Notes: generated from the sequence alone by a model not told the origin. DNA of 63,393 bases, filler included, from Reticulomyxa filosa (GCA_000512085.1; 19 parts of 19 records of this genome joined end to end with filler, not necessarily neighbours in it); one strand, 5' to 3'; positions 20,007 to 29,035 are shown, numbered from the whole stretch's first letter. Program-made: numbers and translations.

Positions 20007-23000
20007 ATGGCAAGTTCGAGAACAACGGAAGAACACATGTATGTGATCAAAAGATGTGGACAGAAAGAGGCCGTTCATTTTGACAAAATTACAAGTAGGA
20101 TCAAGAAGTTATGCTGGGGTTTATCAGAGGTGGTTGACCCGGTTCAGGTGGCCATTAAAGTTAAAATATATGGAAGAGTAAAATAATAAAAGTCAGCGCG
20201 ATTGCCTCAATTTACAATAGGTATGTGGAGGAGTATACAAAGGTGTGACAACAGTAGAATTGGATGAGTTGGCGGCACAAACTGCCGCGCACATGGTAAC
20301 CGTCCATCCAGATTACGGAGAATTGGCAGCAAGAATTGAAGTTTCCAATTTGCACAAAACGACATTGAAGAACTTGAGTGACGTGGCAGACGTATTGTAT
20401 CGTCATCGTAATCCTAACACTGATGAGAGCGAACCGTTAATTGATGAAAAGCTGTATACCTTCATTGTGAAACATAAAGAAAAATTGGACAAGGTGTTGG
20501 TGCAGTTTAACATTAAAAAAATTCACACACACGATTTCATTCTCAACCAATCAAAAATCATAAAATGAGATAAAAAAAGTAATACGATTGGGAAAAAAAA
20601 AAAAACTAAAAAGTGAAAGAGATTATGAATATGATTACTTTGGTATCAAAACACTTCAATATTCTTATTTGCTGAGGGCCAACGGCAAAATTGTTGAGAG
20701 ACCACAACATATGTTAATGCGTGTATCATTGGGTATCCATTTGCCAGATATTGATGCGGCCCTCGAAACTTACAATTGTCTTAGTCAAAAGTGGATTATT
20801 CATGCTTCCCCGACTTTGTTCAATGCTGGCACGCCACGTCCACAGCTATCTTCATGCTTTTTGTTGACCATGAAAGAAGACTCCATTGAAGGCGTCTACG
20901 ATACTTTAAAAGTTTAATAGAAATGCACTGTGTAATTATTTTGTTTTTTTGTGAAGAATGCAATAGTGCATATAAGAATTTTATTTACTAAAGTGTCACA
21001 AACGAGCATAGAAAAAAGTAGAGGGAGGGAGAAGAAAGAGAAAAAATACAAAGTGTCATTTATTGTACATGCACTTAATAGCAATGCGCTCAGATTTCAA
21101 AATACGGTGGTGGCATTGGCATTGCGGCACATTGCATTCGTGCAACTGGCTCTTATGTTCATGGGACAAATGGCACTGCAAACGGTATTGTGCCTATGCT
21201 AAGGGTATTTAATGACACTGCCAAATATATCAATCAAGGTCCTGGAAAGCGCAAAGGTAATTGTTTTTTGCTATTGCTGTTGAAAACGAAGTTAGAAACA
21301 ATATTACAAACGGAAAATAAACAATCAATTATGGATAACACGGTCTTTACTCACACACACACAAAAAGGAGCATTTGCAATATATCTCGAGCCTTGGCAC
21401 GCTGATATATTTGAATTTTTGGATCTGCGCAGGAACCATGGAAGTGAAGAAGAACGAACACGCGATTTGTTTTTAGCGCTGTGGGTCCCAGATCTTTTCA
21501 TGAATCGGGTGAAAAATGATGAAATTTGGAGTCTGATGTGTCCGAACGAGTGCAAAGGATTGTTTGATGTCTGGGGCGAAGAGTTTGAAAAGTTGTATTG
21601 TTTTTATGAAAGTAAGCAGCGATATCGCAAGCAGATTAAGGCAAGACAACTGTGGACAGCTATCATTCACTCCCAAATTGAAACCGGAGTGCCTTACATG
21701 GTTTATAAAGGTAAGTGCAATTTGTTTCCTTGCCATTAAAAATTAAGAGACATTGATTGCAACATTATCTCTTCTTTTTTTTTCTCTTTTTGGGATTGTT
21801 TGCGCGAATCACATTTTCAATACTCGTCGAACGATGAAATAGATCATTGCAATCGCAAAAGCAATCAACAGAATTTGGGAACAATTAAATCTTCAAATTT
21901 ATGCACAGAAATTGTGGAGTACACATCTCCAGATGAAATTGCTGTATGTAATTTGGCCTCTATCTCGTTGCCCAAATTTGTCAATGTTGCGACACGAACA
22001 TTTGATTTGAAAAATTAGTAGAAGTTACGAAAATAGTAACCCGAAATTTGAACAAAATTATTGACATTAATTATTATCCAATGAAAGAGGCAAAAACTTC
22101 GAATTTGAAGCATCGCCCTATTGGCATTGGTGTTCAAGGTCTGGCAGATGTATTCATATTGCTGCGCTTTCCATTTGAAAGCACAGAGGCTCAGAAATTA
22201 AATCGTGATATCTTTGAGGCTATTTACTTTGGTGCTGTGACAACTTCGTGTGAACTCGCAAAAATTGACGGACCTTACCAAACATATCCTGGCAGTCCTG
22301 CATCGAAAGGAAAACTGCAATTTGATTTATGGGGAGTCAAGCCGTCTGATCGCTGGGATTGGACGACTTTGAAAGAAAATATCTCCAAATATGGTGTTCA
22401 TTTCTTTTTTTTTTTCATTTTCACTTTTCAAGAAGAGAGCAAACAAAAATGTCATACATATGAACAGGTATTCGCAATAGCCTATTGGTGGCTCCTATGC
22501 CTACAGCAACGACATCACAGATACTTGGCAATAACGAGTGTTTTGAGCCTTATACAAACAACGTTTATATTCGTCGCACATTGGCTGGAGAATTTGTTTG
22601 TTTGAATGCTCACTTATTGCGCGATCTTATTGCATTAGACATTTGGAATGAATCATTGAAAAACAAGATATTGTTTTATCACGGAAGTATTCAATCATTA
22701 AAAGAAATACCAGACGAACTAAAACTCCTATATAAAACTGTTTGGGAAATCCCCCAAAAAATTGTCATTGATATGGCGCTTGCACGGGGTCCATTCGTTG
22801 ATCAGTCCCAATCCCTTAATATTTATATGAACAATTGCAACTATGGCAAGCTTTCTTCCATGCATTTTTATGGATGGAGTCGTGGGTTGAAGACAGGAAT
22901 GTATTATCTGCGGACCAAGCCAGCAGCTCATCCTATTCAATTTACAGTTGATAAAGAGGCCATTGAAAAAGAACTTTCCCTTCAACAAACAAAAGAAAAT

Positions 23001-23066
23001 AAGCAAACAAGAGTTACTACTCCTACATCCCAATTTGAAAAGGATAAATGCGACACGTGTGGTTAA
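20007..23066 (+). CDS. RRM1: Class Ia ribonucleoside-diphosphate reductase large subunit (R1)
   Basis: ATP cone [22 protein letters not shown]; [67 protein letters not shown] and C-terminal CDTCG. About 7 exons. One-base frameshift at the A5 run 22010-22014. Confidence 0.97.
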
Positions 23067-23620: not shown

Positions 23621-24760
23621 ATGGGGTGTTGCATAACTGGTGATCAGAGCAGTACACAACGTTCCAACCAACCTCTTTTGGGCTCCTCGTCTTCCGTAAG
23701 GCCGACATACCAGCCAACGTACCAACAAACATACCAGCCAAAGTACCAGCCACAACCGACCTATCGACAAAACCCAACCCCTTCGTCACGAGCGAGCAAT
23801 GATGGTAATTGCTTTGGAGAGTGTACTTCCAAGAATCAAAAAACCATTTTGAGCAATTTGTGGAAAATGGAGCCACAAGGACAAACTAAGCTGCGAGACG
23901 CCATAATGAATGCATGTATACAAATGCATACGTTGCAAAAAATTACGGAAGAAATGGTGGATGCGACTAGAGGGAGTTCTGATGTAAACTGGCGATTCGT
24001 GAATGTGATTTTGACAGATGGACAAGATACTTCGTCTACCCATTCGCTGCGAGAAGTTAAAGTTATTTTATTTGGACTGGACGAGCTCTTGGGCAACAAA
24101 TGTGCCACTTTCTTAATGTTAGTTTACCCAAACGACTATTGTTGTGTTAATACAAGGAGGGAAGAGTGGAAGAGTAAGCAAGGTAAAAAAAGACTGTGAT
24201 AAGTAATAAATTAATCTTAATACCAATCGAATTCGACAATGTTATAAATGTTTTTTTTTGGTACCACAGCGGGATCGGAAGTGACGAAAATGAATTTGGT
24301 GAACTAAAACAACTTGCTCGGGAAATAAAATCCGTGTCGTATATTCATGTCAAAGACAGCGGCGCGATTCAAGAAGTCTTCGAACGAATCCAAGTCGAAT
24401 TGGGCATTGTTAGGCAAACTGCAATTTTGGATACTGGTAGTATGCTGATTGCTGCTCAACAAAATAACGTTACACACAACAAACAATGTCTTTGTAACCC
24501 GATTTCAGTCAAACACGAACAAATTACAAATAACAAATAAAATAAGAGTTATATGATATAATTGTGTTGAACAGCTAGCGTTCAATTTGAAATTGAATCG
24601 TTATTTGGTCTTGTTCACTATCGACCGAAGTGGCTCGATGGCTGGAGGAAAATGGAAAGCAACTTGTCAGGGATTGGCTAGCTTTTTGTCTCATTTGACT
24701 GATAACGACTTGTTTGGCGTTCAAGTGTTCAGTAGCGATGTTTCGTGGATCAATATGTAA
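23621..24760 (+). CDS. vWA-domain protein, circularly permuted, MGCC N-terminus, 293 aa
   Basis: In-phase exons 23621-24117, 24270-24468, 24575-24760 with GT-AG introns. Motifs in order: PQGQTKLRDAI, VILTDGQD, FLIGIG, IQEVFERI, then LFTIDRSGSMAG. Confidence 0.85.
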
Positions 24761-26742
24761 GAAAAGAGTGAAAAAGATGGACAACTCCAAACCATACATG
24801 GCAGGGTTTTTGTTTTGTAAATTTCAAATACAAATATCAACTAACCATACCCCAAAATTATTACATTGTAAGAAAAGTAACGTTTGTTGATGTCACAATT
24901 TTTTTTTATTAGTCCTTGCTTTGCCACATTACCCATTTCCTATAAATTTTTTATCTCATTCTTATAAAATTTTTTAAAGACCCTTTTTGTAGCAAAAAGC
25001 ACTCCATTTTAAATTATATTATTTTTTTGGTAATGGATCACAAGTTTCAAGACGAATGAAAACAGACCAATTCCTTCGAACAAATAAATTAAGTGTGTCG
25101 ATAAAAATCGGACAAAGAAAAAGTGAACGGAGTACTCCAAATATGTTGAAAGGAATTTGTCAATGAAAAATTCAAAAAAGGTTTTGTGGAAGAAACATTT
25201 TTTTCTGCCACACGATACTCAATTTTTTTACGTTTGCTCTCGCTGCAACCAATTTTTTCAAGCGCAATGACATTGTCTTCCCACGAGTTATTTTTTTGAC
25301 TAGGGAGTTCTGCGCCAAAATGATTTGGGTATTGCAAAAACCAAATCATCCAACAAATGTTGCATAATAACACTTTGTTTTCATTTTCATTTTTTGCAAC
25401 ATTCAAACTGTACCAATTACCTTGATTTATTAAGCAACAATCACTGTTTTTCTCAAAAATACAAACCAGTATGTTTTCTTTTCGTTTTACAAAAATGAAA
25501 AAAATAAGTGTAATACGAGAGGAACAAAAAGGGATCATCCAATTACCATTGATGAATAATGCGTACTTTAAGCAAGAAATAATACGGACACTTAGTGAAA
25601 ATCTTTGAATTTGGCTCCTCAGAACACTGTGGTAGTGCATTATACCACATTTGTAATAAGTCTTCGCTTAATGCTTGCTGATGGAAATCTCTTCGTCATT
25701 CCATTTTTTTTTGTTTTAGATTTTTGTTTTGTTTTTGAATACCTGAAAGAAGGCAGTTTTGATTAAAACGCTTGCTGTCTCTTTCATTGTTGATGATCCT
25801 TCGACCAACAAAAAAGACAAGAGACAGTTAACTTGGAAATTCTGCAATAGGTCGAAAATACATACCGAATTGGTATATATCCTGAGCACACGCTAATTAA
25901 CATCATTTGCATACAATGCGCGTGTGGTGCGAGGCAAGTACTGGATTCTGCTTTGTCAAGGCTCGAAATGGTGTTGTTCAAACAGACTGATAACTGCCAC
26001 AACGCTTGTGGCTCACGAAAGGACATCCAGCTCATTCTCACGATGAATGCTTCAATTGCTTACAGTTTAGGAATTGATCTAATACTGACTTATTTTTTAT
26101 GCGAGAGAAAATAACGCAAGTCACGCTGCTGAACGCAAGGGTTGCAAATTTTTAACAGTGTTTTAGTTATTTGTTTTTCCATTTTAAATTTTGTCTTTTC
26201 AGAAAAAGCTTGTCTTATTCACTTGTATTAGATCTTTTCAAAAGAAATCATTTAATAGCACAAGAAACGGAAATATTGAATAAACACAACATAAATTCGA
26301 AAAACTCCACTTTAAGTTACTAATAGAAAAATAGCTTTGCTGACGCTTTTTAAAGATCAATTTACTAATTTTTTGCTTACTACATAAAATGCAAAAAAAA
26401 AAATTGGCTTATCGTACCATAAATTTATGTGAAATTATTTTTTATAATATTTGTTGTTGTATGTTTTTCTTGAACAAAATTGTATCTAGAGTTTAAAATT
26501 CACAATTTGACTATTCAATAGCTAAATGATGTTAAAAGTAAACATCCAACAAGAAAACCTTTTTAAAGATAAAATTGAATAATTTTAATTGTGTCCAAAA
26601 GTTTAATTGCAGATTTAAAAAGAAAACGTTTTTACGGGTGAATTTATTTACCCCTTAAAAGTTTGTTTTTAAGTGTTGTTTCAGTGTTGTCTTTCTTCAA
26701 TTTGTTCTTTAATTTCTTAAAGCGAAAAGTAAAAAGTAAAAA

Positions 26743-28843
26743 ATGGAATTGTCGCAAAAATTGACTCAAATGAATGAATACAATATTAAGCAAGACCAGT
26801 TGAACAAGGCTTTCGTGAGCGCAGAGCGAACGAAATCAGCCTTCCGGTCACAAAGGGAAACGGCAGAAAAGTCGTTGTTGTCATTAAAGCAAGAGGAAAG
26901 GGACATGACAAAACAAGGTAGTGGTACCCATTCATACAGTTAAATTTTGTTTGTTTGTTTGAAACAAAAAAACAAGTGCAACGACAACAAAAGTATTTTT
27001 TTGTATGTATACGTTACGCGGTGGGACCGAAATGGACAGGTCCTGAGCAAAAGGACAAGCTGAAAAAAAGAATTGAGGACGTCTTAGGCGAAATAAAAGC
27101 AGCAGAGATGGAAGAGCAAAAGTGTTATGATACCGAAATGATGTTGTACCAACAGCAGCAACAGCTGAAGAATGTCCGAGAAAACTTTGGTAACGAATCG
27201 CAACTGTTGCCAATTGAGTCAGGATTATCGAAAACGCCTCAAAAACCTATCCCAAGCCAAGTCTGTGTGAAAGAGGAAAAAGGATACTTTTTTTTTAATT
27301 TTTATTTATGCGTCCATTTGTTTCTATTGAAACAACGTTTTGCAAAGAACCAGTTTTTTTTTTTTATTTAAAAAAAAAAATGTAGTTCTCCTCATCCTCC
27401 AAAGTATCAGAAAAGGGAACACATGAACATCGTCCAAATGAGGAATTACGTGAAGCGCATGAACAACATGGAACCCGCAAACTTCCTGGCCTGCAAGGAC
27501 AATCCGGATTTCAAAGTGGAGTATCATCCACTGGACCAAGTGGAACGTCCTCTGGAACTACAGGGACATCTGGAATTAGTGGATTTGGTGGACCTGGGAC
27601 AGATCAACGCGCTGGACATGGTGATGTCGGAGTGCAAGGAACCGGGTCTCGTGTGCAAGGACACGATGTTAGCGGTGTGCAAGGACATGATGTTAGCGGT
27701 GTGCAAGGAACCGGATCTCGTGTGCAAGGAACTGGATCTCGTGTGCAAGGACACGATATTAGCGGTGTGCACGAACGTGGAATGGGCTCCGCGGCGAAAG
27801 AACAGTTTGGGATGGGCTCGTTACATCCACAACAACAACAACAACAACAACAAAGTGGAACTGCCTTTCCCTCCTCCACCACTTCTACCTCTTCCTCGCG
27901 CCAGACTGCTGAGCAACCACATGGATCGCACGAACAACGTGGACCGCAGCAAGAACGTGCAATACAAGGACATGACATTGGCTTTGGAGTGCAAGGACAG
28001 CAAGGAACACAAGAGCACTCGTTTGGAGCGCAAGGAGTACAAGGGCATCAAGGAACACAAGAGCACTCGTTTGGAGCGCAAGGAGTACAAGGACAGCAAG
28101 GAACACAAGAGCGCTCGTTTGGAGCACAAGGAGTGCAAGGAGTGCAAGGAGTGCAAGGACAGAGTGGACTTCCAAGACAAGCCGGAATACAAAGTGGAAC
28201 ACAAGAGCGTAGCGGAGTGCAAGGACAACAACACGGAATGCAAGGTGTGCAAGGCCATGGGATGCAAGAAGCCGTACCGGAACGCAGGCTTCATGAGCAA
28301 TTTGGGACGCACCAACAACAACAACAACAACAACAACATGGACAATCGGCGATGTCGGAATCAAACTCGTGGGAACAACCTTTACCCGACGCCAAAGGGA
28401 CGATAGTAGGACAACAAGACTATGATATAAGAAAGGCACGAGAAGATGCACGTAATTTGCGAAGTGCTATGAAAGGTAATTTTTATGCGTTTGCATTGTG
28501 TGTGTGTGTGCATATGTGTGAAAGGACAATAAACAACAACTCCTTTTTTTTTTCCTCCCCTTCAAAAAATAGGAGCTGGAGCCGACCGAGGTGTCATTGC
28601 ACAAATCGCGGGAAACCGAACAATAATGCAGCGACAAATGATTTCCAAAGAGTACGCATTAATGGAAGGAAAAGAGAAACAAAACTTAATCGATGATTTG
28701 AGATCCGAGATTACAGGAGACTTGGGAAAGCTGGTAGTGCCATTGTTTATGCAGCCCGGAGAGTTTGATGCATATTTGTTGACAAAAGCAATGGAAGGAA
28801 TTGGCTGCGATTCAGATATACTGATCGAAATCTTGTGCACTCG
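26743..28843 (+). CDS. Annexin with very long N-terminal coiled-coil and G/Q-repeat head (3' truncated)
   Basis: Exons 26743-26917, 27040-27260, 27386-28475, 28573-28843 splice in phase. Annexin repeats EDARNLRSAMKG|AGADRGVI...QRQMISKEY...LIDDLRSEITGD and FDAYLLTKAMEGIGCDSDILIEILCTR. Confidence 0.9.
27625..28260 (+). repeat. Coding tandem repeats in the annexin head
   Basis: 21-nt (QGTGSRV) and 24-nt (QGHDVSGV) units, three 48-nt units (QGTQEHSFGAQGVQGx), 9-nt GVQ units and CAA poly-Q tracts. Confidence 0.85.
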
Positions 28844-29035
28844 GTAAATAAATAAATAAAAAGGAGGGAAAAAAAAAGAAGAGGTAGGGGGGGGGGGGTA
28901 GCATTTTTCAAAAATGAGACACTTTTTTTTTTTTTNNNNNNNNNNNNNNNNNNNNNNNNNNNNNNNNNNNNNNNNNNNNTTAATTAATTAANNNNNNNNN
29001 NNNNNNNNNNNNNNNNNNNNNNNNNNNNNNNNNNN

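Follow-up and report, generated by a model that had tools for sequence, protein, structure and literature searches.

Few adhesion and adaptor modules have been studied as thoroughly as the von Willebrand factor A (vWA) domain with its metal ion-dependent adhesion site (MIDAS), which is found in integrins, VWF, complement, copines and the proteasome. In the canonical vWA domain, the beta1 part with the DxSxS motif comes first, and the MIDAS Thr loop and the TDG motif come later. Both termini of the canonical domain are near each other on the side facing away from the MIDAS, and beta3 ends toward this side too, as in integrin I and VWF A domains. Here we analyzed RFI_01802, a gene of the foraminifer Reticulomyxa filosa in which this order is changed. 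The gene is located on the 15,346-bp contig ASPP01001807.1 and was studied as part of a window, i.e., the whole stretch of DNA analyzed, of 63,393 nucleotides, in which parts of the R. filosa genome are joined with filler. Very probably, RFI_01802 is a single gene encoding a 293-residue protein with one circularly permuted vWA domain.

The vWA domains of ITIH, CLCA and alpha2delta proteins (PF00092, PF13519) are the best matches in sequence as well as in structure, and the set of DxSxS, Thr and Asp is common to them and to the R. filosa family. The ITIH, CLCA and alpha2delta proteins are extracellular and contain beta1-alpha1-beta2-beta3 first, whereas in the R. filosa family these elements come last, a signal peptide is absent from the family members (judged by eye) and the anchors are predicted to be of the cytosolic type. 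In function, the nearest analogies are copines (C2-C2-vWA) and Rpn10 (vWA-UIM), intracellular vWA proteins with membranes or ubiquitin-related partners as their sites of action. Copines bind membranes with Ca2+-dependent C2 domains and contain a canonical vWA domain, whereas the R. filosa protein contains a predicted lipid anchor and a permuted one. Rpn10 is not known to have an intact MIDAS. The Rpn10 vWA domain is among the structural matches reported below, and some members of the family contain weakly scoring UBA- or NZF-like modules; beyond the superfamily level, no sequence relationship of copines or Rpn10 to the family was found.

A natural permutation has been described for cpRAS, a circularly permuted Ras-like GTPase of protists whose accompanying vWA domain is canonical (PMC2430557). 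Here, too, a nucleotide- or metal-binding alpha/beta domain is permuted in nature, in scattered protist lineages and with a swapped order of motifs; however, it is the GTPase domain of cpRAS that is permuted and not the vWA domain, and cpRAS is unrelated in sequence to the R. filosa family. In addition, a permuted peptidase is mentioned in an eLife paper. A search of the literature accessible as full text yielded no description of a natural circularly permuted vWA domain.

A protein search with the open reading frame (ORF) of exon 1 retrieved RFI_01802 itself (100% identity) and the paralog RFI_04034 (64%). The features of the gene are listed below; numbers of family rows are taken from the family alignment A3, and P0005 is the natural homolog for which a structure was modelled.

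23621 to 24117, plus strand: exon 1, 497 nucleotides, ending in phase 2; contains the MGCC start, the P/T/Y/Q linker and the vWA domain from alpha2 to just before beta5
23621 to 23641, plus strand: MGCCITG; Gly2 and Thr6 form a myristoylation-type pattern, Cys3 and Cys4 are possible palmitoylation sites
23642 to 23809, plus strand: low-complexity linker of residues 8-63 that carries PTYQ-like repeats; the paralog does not conserve it, and in P0005 the corresponding region is predicted to be disordered
23885 to 23887, plus strand: codon of the MIDAS Thr (T89, in PQGQT); Thr in 45 of 48 family rows
24017 to 24019, plus strand: codon of the MIDAS Asp (D133, of TDG in ILTDGQD); Asp in 50 of 50 family rows
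24118 to 24269, plus strand: intron 1, 152 nucleotides, GTTAGT...CAG, phase 2; within it, the similarity to the paralog breaks down
24270 to 24468, plus strand: exon 2, 199 nucleotides; contains beta5 (IGIG), alpha5, beta6 (YIHV), alpha6 (AIQEVFERIQVELG) and, of the linker between the old termini, the first half
24469 to 24574, plus strand: intron 2, 106 nucleotides, GTTACA...CAG, phase 0; located inside the linker of the old C- and N-termini
24575 to 24760, plus strand: exon 3, 183 coding nucleotides plus TAA; contains the second half of this linker, beta1 with DRSGS, alpha1, beta2, beta3 and the stop codon
24623 to 24637, plus strand: DRSGS (DxSxS); Asp in 49 of 50, first Ser in 49 of 50 and second Ser in 49 of 50 family rows

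The coding parts of the three exons (497 + 199 + 183) add up to 879 nucleotides or 293 codons, in phase, and the protein ends with WINM followed by the TAA at 24758-60. The start codon is fixed at ATG 23621, since an in-frame TAA is located two codons earlier (23612-14). The vWA part of exon 1 includes the loop of the MIDAS Thr (QGQTKLRDAI) as well as beta4 (VNVILTDGQD), ATFL|I|GIG straddles intron 1, and SYIHV and AIQEVFERIQ are both found within exon 2; exon 3 encodes what is the N-terminal third of the domain in canonical vWA proteins. An earlier note on this DNA, made from the sequence alone, had listed these motifs, among them MGCC, the PTYQ-type stretch, TDG and DRSGS; all of them are present where it had placed them, and its proposal that the three exons splice in phase to 293 residues was borne out as well. 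The note had further stated that exon 3 is missing from the ORF track, which is only partly right: the mechanical ORF list contains a TTG-started ORF of 57 residues (24587-24760), but the gene model RFI_01802 does omit exon 3. An upstream DxSxS exon feeding exon 1, which the note had considered as well, does not exist, as shown by the in-frame stop before the ATG and by the start of the paralog with MGNCC.

Both splice junctions were seen in a 340-nucleotide contig of the public run X1, which maps to 24050-24117, 24270-24468 and 24575-24647 and joins 24117 to 24270 and 24468 to 24575, with GT..AG at both joints. Run X1 was the sole run with this sequence, its contigs come without information on depth or strand, and its RNA nature is only guessed. 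Since an intron-free copy records the spliced form, the junction evidence stands even if run X1 is DNA. The contig is ~3% divergent from the window; the five differences in exon 2 affect third codon positions and leave the encoded residues unchanged, so that its source is an allele, a strain or a very close paralog under selection. For intron 2, a phase-1 donor (G|GTAGTA after 24436) was considered, which is out of phase and was ruled out by the paralog and by the run X1 contig. The true donor is the phase-0 AAC|GTTACA at 24468, which is equivalent to AAA|GTTAAA...CAG in the paralog.

The public models of both genes differ from these structures. In the GenBank model of RFI_01802 (290 residues, 23621-24540), part of intron 1 is kept, the donor of exon 2 is read through to a stop at 24540, and exon 3 is absent. 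The public model of RFI_04034 (5848-6779 of the paralog locus, L001) starts at an internal Met instead of the true ATG at L001 5611 (MGNCC), and both introns are mis-spliced. The corrected products are 293 residues long for RFI_01802 and 325 residues long for RFI_04034. An alignment of the two public models is too distorted by the mis-modelled stretches for profile use.

The elements of the corrected protein are arranged in the order alpha2, MIDAS Thr loop, beta4 (TDG), beta5, beta6, alpha6, a linker of ~25-30 residues and beta1 (DxSxS)-alpha1-beta2-beta3, after which the protein ends. This is not the canonical vWA order (beta1-alpha1-beta2-beta3-alpha2-alpha3-beta4-alpha4-beta5-alpha5-beta6-alpha6), and the protein is a vWA homolog of altered topology, not a standard member. 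In Pfam searches, exon 3 alone matched VWA_2 positions 1-49 (E=6.6e-5, 23.9 bits with a cut-off of 27) and VWA positions 2-49 (19.5 bits with a cut-off of 23.8). Full-length homologs scored above the PF00092 threshold (P0004 32.9, P0009 34.2 and P0033 43.6 bits), and in the homolog P0004, residues 27-130 match positions 83-173 of VWA (PF00092), while residues 175-218 match positions 1-48 of VWA_2. When the family profile was compared to PDB sequences, ITIH1 (E=4.8e-10), ITIH4, alpha2delta-1 and CLCA1 were found. The ITIH1 chain aligns in swapped order, with residues 281-339 matching profile positions 193-251 and residues 355-404 matching positions 41-93. Altogether, three approaches, namely Pfam, the PDB profile search and the structure comparison described below, support the swapped order.

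To assign the order in relatives, the query was split into segment A, the alpha2-beta4 block, and segment B, beta1-beta3. In relatives of canonical order, segment A starts 2-15 residues after the end of segment B; in P0052, for example, B comprises residues 37-90 and A residues 93-176. Since the two segments abut in these proteins, the termini of the permuted proteins correspond to a single cut. Sequence comparison places this cut between beta3 and alpha2, with no segment duplicated or lost. As in a natural circular permutant, the segments are swapped, adjacent in the parent and present only once each on the contig. All five MIDAS ligands are found in the protein, and their conservation in the family is 94-100% (alignment A3); the ligands are strongly conserved and make up a putative metal site. 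The earlier note had proposed a permuted order that retains the five MIDAS ligands, and it had looked for support in two partial vWA matches in reversed order: the swapped Pfam and PDB profile matches together with the family conservation agree with the former, and the alignments of P0004 and ITIH1 provide the latter.

The permuted order is not confined to R. filosa. A phmmer search of 1.84 billion representative proteins with the paralog yielded 113 matches at E<=1e-3. Among 116 related proteins, 67 are permuted (A before B) and 8 are canonical (B before A), the rest being fragments. Members with an organism name are all foraminiferal and come from Bolivina argentea, Nonionella stella, Ammonia sp., Rosalina sp. 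and the two R. filosa genes. The Bolivina, Nonionella, Ammonia and Rosalina proteins are derived from EukProt/MMETSP transcriptomes, the members without an organism name from metagenome, metatranscriptome or Logan contigs. Because the transcriptome-derived proteins are permuted as well, the order is independent of gene models made on genomes. The comparison indicates that the permuted order, seen in at least 67 sequence clusters, is the norm of the family and not the property of one odd gene.

Several members carry additional modules. P0023, which like P0115 is from Nonionella stella, combines a permuted vWA domain with three MBT repeats, P0031 combines it with a SAM domain and an NZF-like zinc finger, and weak UBA-like N-terminal regions were seen in P0010 (Pfam) and in P0008 and P0025 (by eye). 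These fused modules hint at chromatin- or ubiquitin-linked roles in some members. Three proteins with canonical order, P0061, P0140 and P0141, carry the JGI name 'Cys-rich protein (TIGR01571 family)' and are PLAC8-like; their contigs are ~1.2 kb long.

A structure was modelled with AlphaFold2 for P0005 using the 54-row family alignment A3. P0005 has 297 residues, starts with MGCC, contains a Y/Q/P-rich linker and ends directly after beta3. The predicted template modelling score (pTM) is 0.73, and the predicted local distance difference test (pLDDT) is 85-98 at residues 71-220 and 96-98 at residues 251-297 with the C-terminal beta1-alpha1-beta2-beta3, with 50-77 in the linker in between (221-250); most of the domain reaches 90-98. 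The N-terminal 70 residues are predicted to be disordered, and the region equivalent to the low-complexity linker of the R. filosa protein has a pLDDT of 41-61. According to DSSP, the order of elements is alpha2-alpha3-beta4-alpha4-beta5-alpha5-beta6-alpha6-linker-beta1-alpha1-beta2-beta3, which is that of a rotated vWA domain. The two segments are predicted to fold into one compact alpha/beta domain.

In an exhaustive VIA search, solved vWA domains were found at or near the top. Residues 72-218 of P0005 superposed with ITIH4 323-459 (Z 10.0, root mean square deviation 2.4 Å, 136 residues), with ITIH1 341-477 (Z 9.8), 4fx5 (Z 8.8), VWF A1 (Z 8.2) and Rpn10 (Z 8.1 and 7.2); the Sec23/24 trunk and integrin I domains were further structural matches. 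Residues 72-218 always aligned to the C-terminal two thirds of the matched domain, and the part of ITIH1 before residue 341 is the region to which the sequence profile aligns the C-terminal part of the model. The fold of the P0005 model is the three-layer alpha/beta/alpha fold of a vWA domain, and order-dependent aligners superpose its alpha2-alpha6 segment only. Foldseek against the PDB gave only weak and mostly irrelevant matches for the P0005 model; since Foldseek is order-dependent, these weak matches do not count against a vWA fold. A shape search of the ESM Atlas resulted in partial vWA matches only and no large cluster of the same order, and a feature search there led to bacterial vWA clusters only.

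The domain could also be completed between subunits, with the C-terminal beta1-alpha1-beta2-beta3 of one chain packed into the alpha2-alpha6 body of its neighbour, so that dimers or polymers would form head-to-tail on the membrane. The long linker (~25-30 residues, pLDDT 50-77) would permit such swapping, and the cut parts the central strand from the rest of the domain, a geometry that may be prone to it. However, the canonical termini are adjacent, so that a linker of 25-30 residues easily closes the domain within one chain, the monomer model of P0005 is confident over both segments (see the pTM above), and part of the linker is both conserved and modelled as a helix, which speaks for a fixed link within the chain. 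We regard completion between subunits as improbable and intramolecular folding, which is predicted for P0005, as the more likely alternative.

The permuted reading also requires that the gene ends with exon 3. When the contig was searched in six frames with the family hidden Markov model (HMM), no vWA-like segment other than the three exons was found below E=1, and the matches of the exons were collinear (exon 1 21-113, E=4e-29; exon 2 115-182, E=5e-16; exon 3 180-241, E=2e-25). A tblastn search of the contig did not detect a second copy of the exon peptides. An intron-free contig of 1,028 bp from a JGI sample, L003, encodes a relative with ~80% identity in the exon 3 part. The ORF of this relative stops at the same residue (WLKM-TGA), and the 275 nucleotides behind it, some of them T-rich, contain no called ORF. 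Termination 0-10 residues past beta3 is seen in many members of the family, also in those derived from transcriptomes. Taken together, the layout of the paralog, conservation, selection (see below) and the lack of a second copy indicate that exon 3 is a real terminal coding exon. On L003, two overlapping ORFs (3-305 and 253-753) were called, since the reading frame shifts (253-305) just before the TDG strand; this shift may reflect a true lesion or an error in sequencing or assembly.

Several points weigh against a single gene with one permuted domain. Single exons score below the Pfam gathering thresholds, and sequential structure aligners match just the larger segment to vWA domains. The model is a prediction for the homolog P0005, which is 36% identical to paralog P0002, and not for the protein encoded here, and the position of beta1 in the sheet as well as the MIDAS geometry are putative. 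The RNA nature of run X1 is guessed and its contig deviates by ~3% (allele, strain or close paralog); likewise, L003 may derive from RNA or from DNA. Finally, no read or contig of this exact gene extends past 24647, so that the stop at 24758 is backed indirectly by relatives, and this TAA lies inside the donor-like AT|GTAAGA, with GTAAGT at this position in the paralog.

The last two points are also what would speak for an artefact, in which exon 3 begins a second canonical vWA domain that is spliced on from the GTAAGA at 24757, or in which a tandem array was mis-assembled: the stop codon overlaps a good-looking donor in both paralogs (AT|GTAAGA and AT|GTAAGT), and no read covers 24648-24760. 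Against this stand the family profile and the tblastn search, in which no further vWA segment appeared on the contig in any frame, and the position of the next called gene, which is on the opposite strand and 330 bp off. Furthermore, the order is common to 67 protein clusters, including transcriptome proteins of four other foraminiferal genera, and in the L003 relative the stop at the same residue is a TGA in a non-donor context with 275 nucleotides without a called ORF behind it. The artefact is very unlikely, and the continuation of exon 3 into a second vWA domain, named in the earlier note as one outcome that would overturn its reading, was not found: there is no further segment on the contig and relatives end alike.

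The paralog locus L001 shows the same order of exons, starts with MGNCC, contains a non-conserved linker, has an exon 2 of 199 and an exon 3 of 183 nucleotides and ends with M-TAA. DNA similarity between the window and L001 begins and ends at the exon borders and stops at the stop codon. The proportions of non-synonymous (pN) and synonymous (pS) differences to the paralog are 0.20 and 0.75 for the domain part of exon 1, 0.16 and 0.75 for exon 2 and 0.14 and 0.72 for exon 3, which is constrained as strongly as the other exons. All three exons are under purifying selection and synonymous sites are saturated. In the low-complexity linker, 18 of 61 residues are identical to the paralog and non-synonymous sites are near saturation. 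A decaying remnant, in which a shortened vWA gene and a stray piece of another have no function, deserves next to no credit and is contradicted by the selection data. The public annotation as a 290-residue hypothetical protein without exon 3 and the sub-threshold Pfam scores of single exons would fit it, but the two genes are old paralogs with a pS of 0.72-0.75 yet a pN of 0.14-0.20 in three exons, exons 2 and 3 are identical in length, a spliced product exists and the MIDAS residues are conserved family-wide.

Two observations touch the origin of the permutation. The stop TAA of both R. filosa paralogs is located inside ATG|TAAG, which resembles a 5' splice site (24755-24763 in the window and 6774-6782 in L001); in the L003 relative, a TGA in a non-donor context is found at 748-756. 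It is speculative that the stop of the paralogs could be a relic of a donor, provided that an intron separated beta3 from alpha2 in the ancestral canonical gene. Intron 2 (24469-24574; L001 6500-6593) lies within the alpha6-beta1 linker, ten codons before beta1. This is the site where tandem copies would be fused if the permutation originated by duplication and truncation.

The N-terminal MGCCITG passes the N-myristoylation pattern check, as do MGNCCTS of the paralog and MGCCFGD of P0005, and both myristoylation and palmitoylation of MGCC are probable. Of 55 representatives with permuted order, 7 have an MG start, 9 have a CaaX-like end (including CSVQ, CSIF, CSLI, CSVF, CAVF and CLLF) and 12 a hydrophobic tail, so that about half of the permuted members have a predicted anchor of one of these types. 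N-acylation, CaaX-like ends and hydrophobic tails would be three routes to the cytosolic face of membranes.

Since beta3 of a canonical domain ends on the face where its two neighbouring termini lie, the permutation should leave the metal-binding face intact and place the new termini on the far side. We propose that the MGCC lipid anchor and the disordered linker of ~60 residues would hold the domain at the cytosolic leaflet of a membrane with the MIDAS face unobstructed. A cation bound to the MIDAS could then complete its coordination via an acidic residue of a partner protein, and the protein would act as a membrane-tethered, metal-dependent adaptor. The predicted anchors of other members and their UBA-like, SAM plus NZF and MBT modules fit such an intracellular adaptor role.

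The neighbourhood of the gene contains the following features.

20007 to 23066, plus strand: ribonucleotide reductase large subunit with ATP-cone, lgN and lgC domains and a CDTCG tail
25089 to 25538, minus strand: gene call for a protein of 149 residues without Pfam match
26743 to 28847, plus strand: gene call for an annexin

Many short run X1 contigs map to a T-rich stretch at 25704-25737 (TTTTTGTTTT...) with a depth of 48.8 and small indels. This pile-up looks like low-complexity cross-matching and not like expression.

For annotation, these results mean that the public models of RFI_01802 and RFI_04034 are wrong and that order-dependent tools (Pfam with its per-domain thresholds, Foldseek) under-call the family. 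If the family holds, assembly of a MIDAS is possible from segments in reverse order, and the natural cut point between beta3 and alpha2 could be used by engineers for split or permuted I-domain sensors. A more far-reaching proposal, to which we assign little likelihood, is that Foraminifera evolved and expanded lineage-specific cytosolic, membrane-tethered MIDAS adaptors in which the permutation itself is functional and not neutral: with the central strand beta1 on a flexible C-terminal arm, it might allow regulated strand exchange between subunits and thereby head-to-tail polymerization on membranes, for instance those of the fast-remodelling reticulopodial network. For the Foraminifera, the family would represent a lineage-enriched set of putative intracellular membrane-tethered adaptors.

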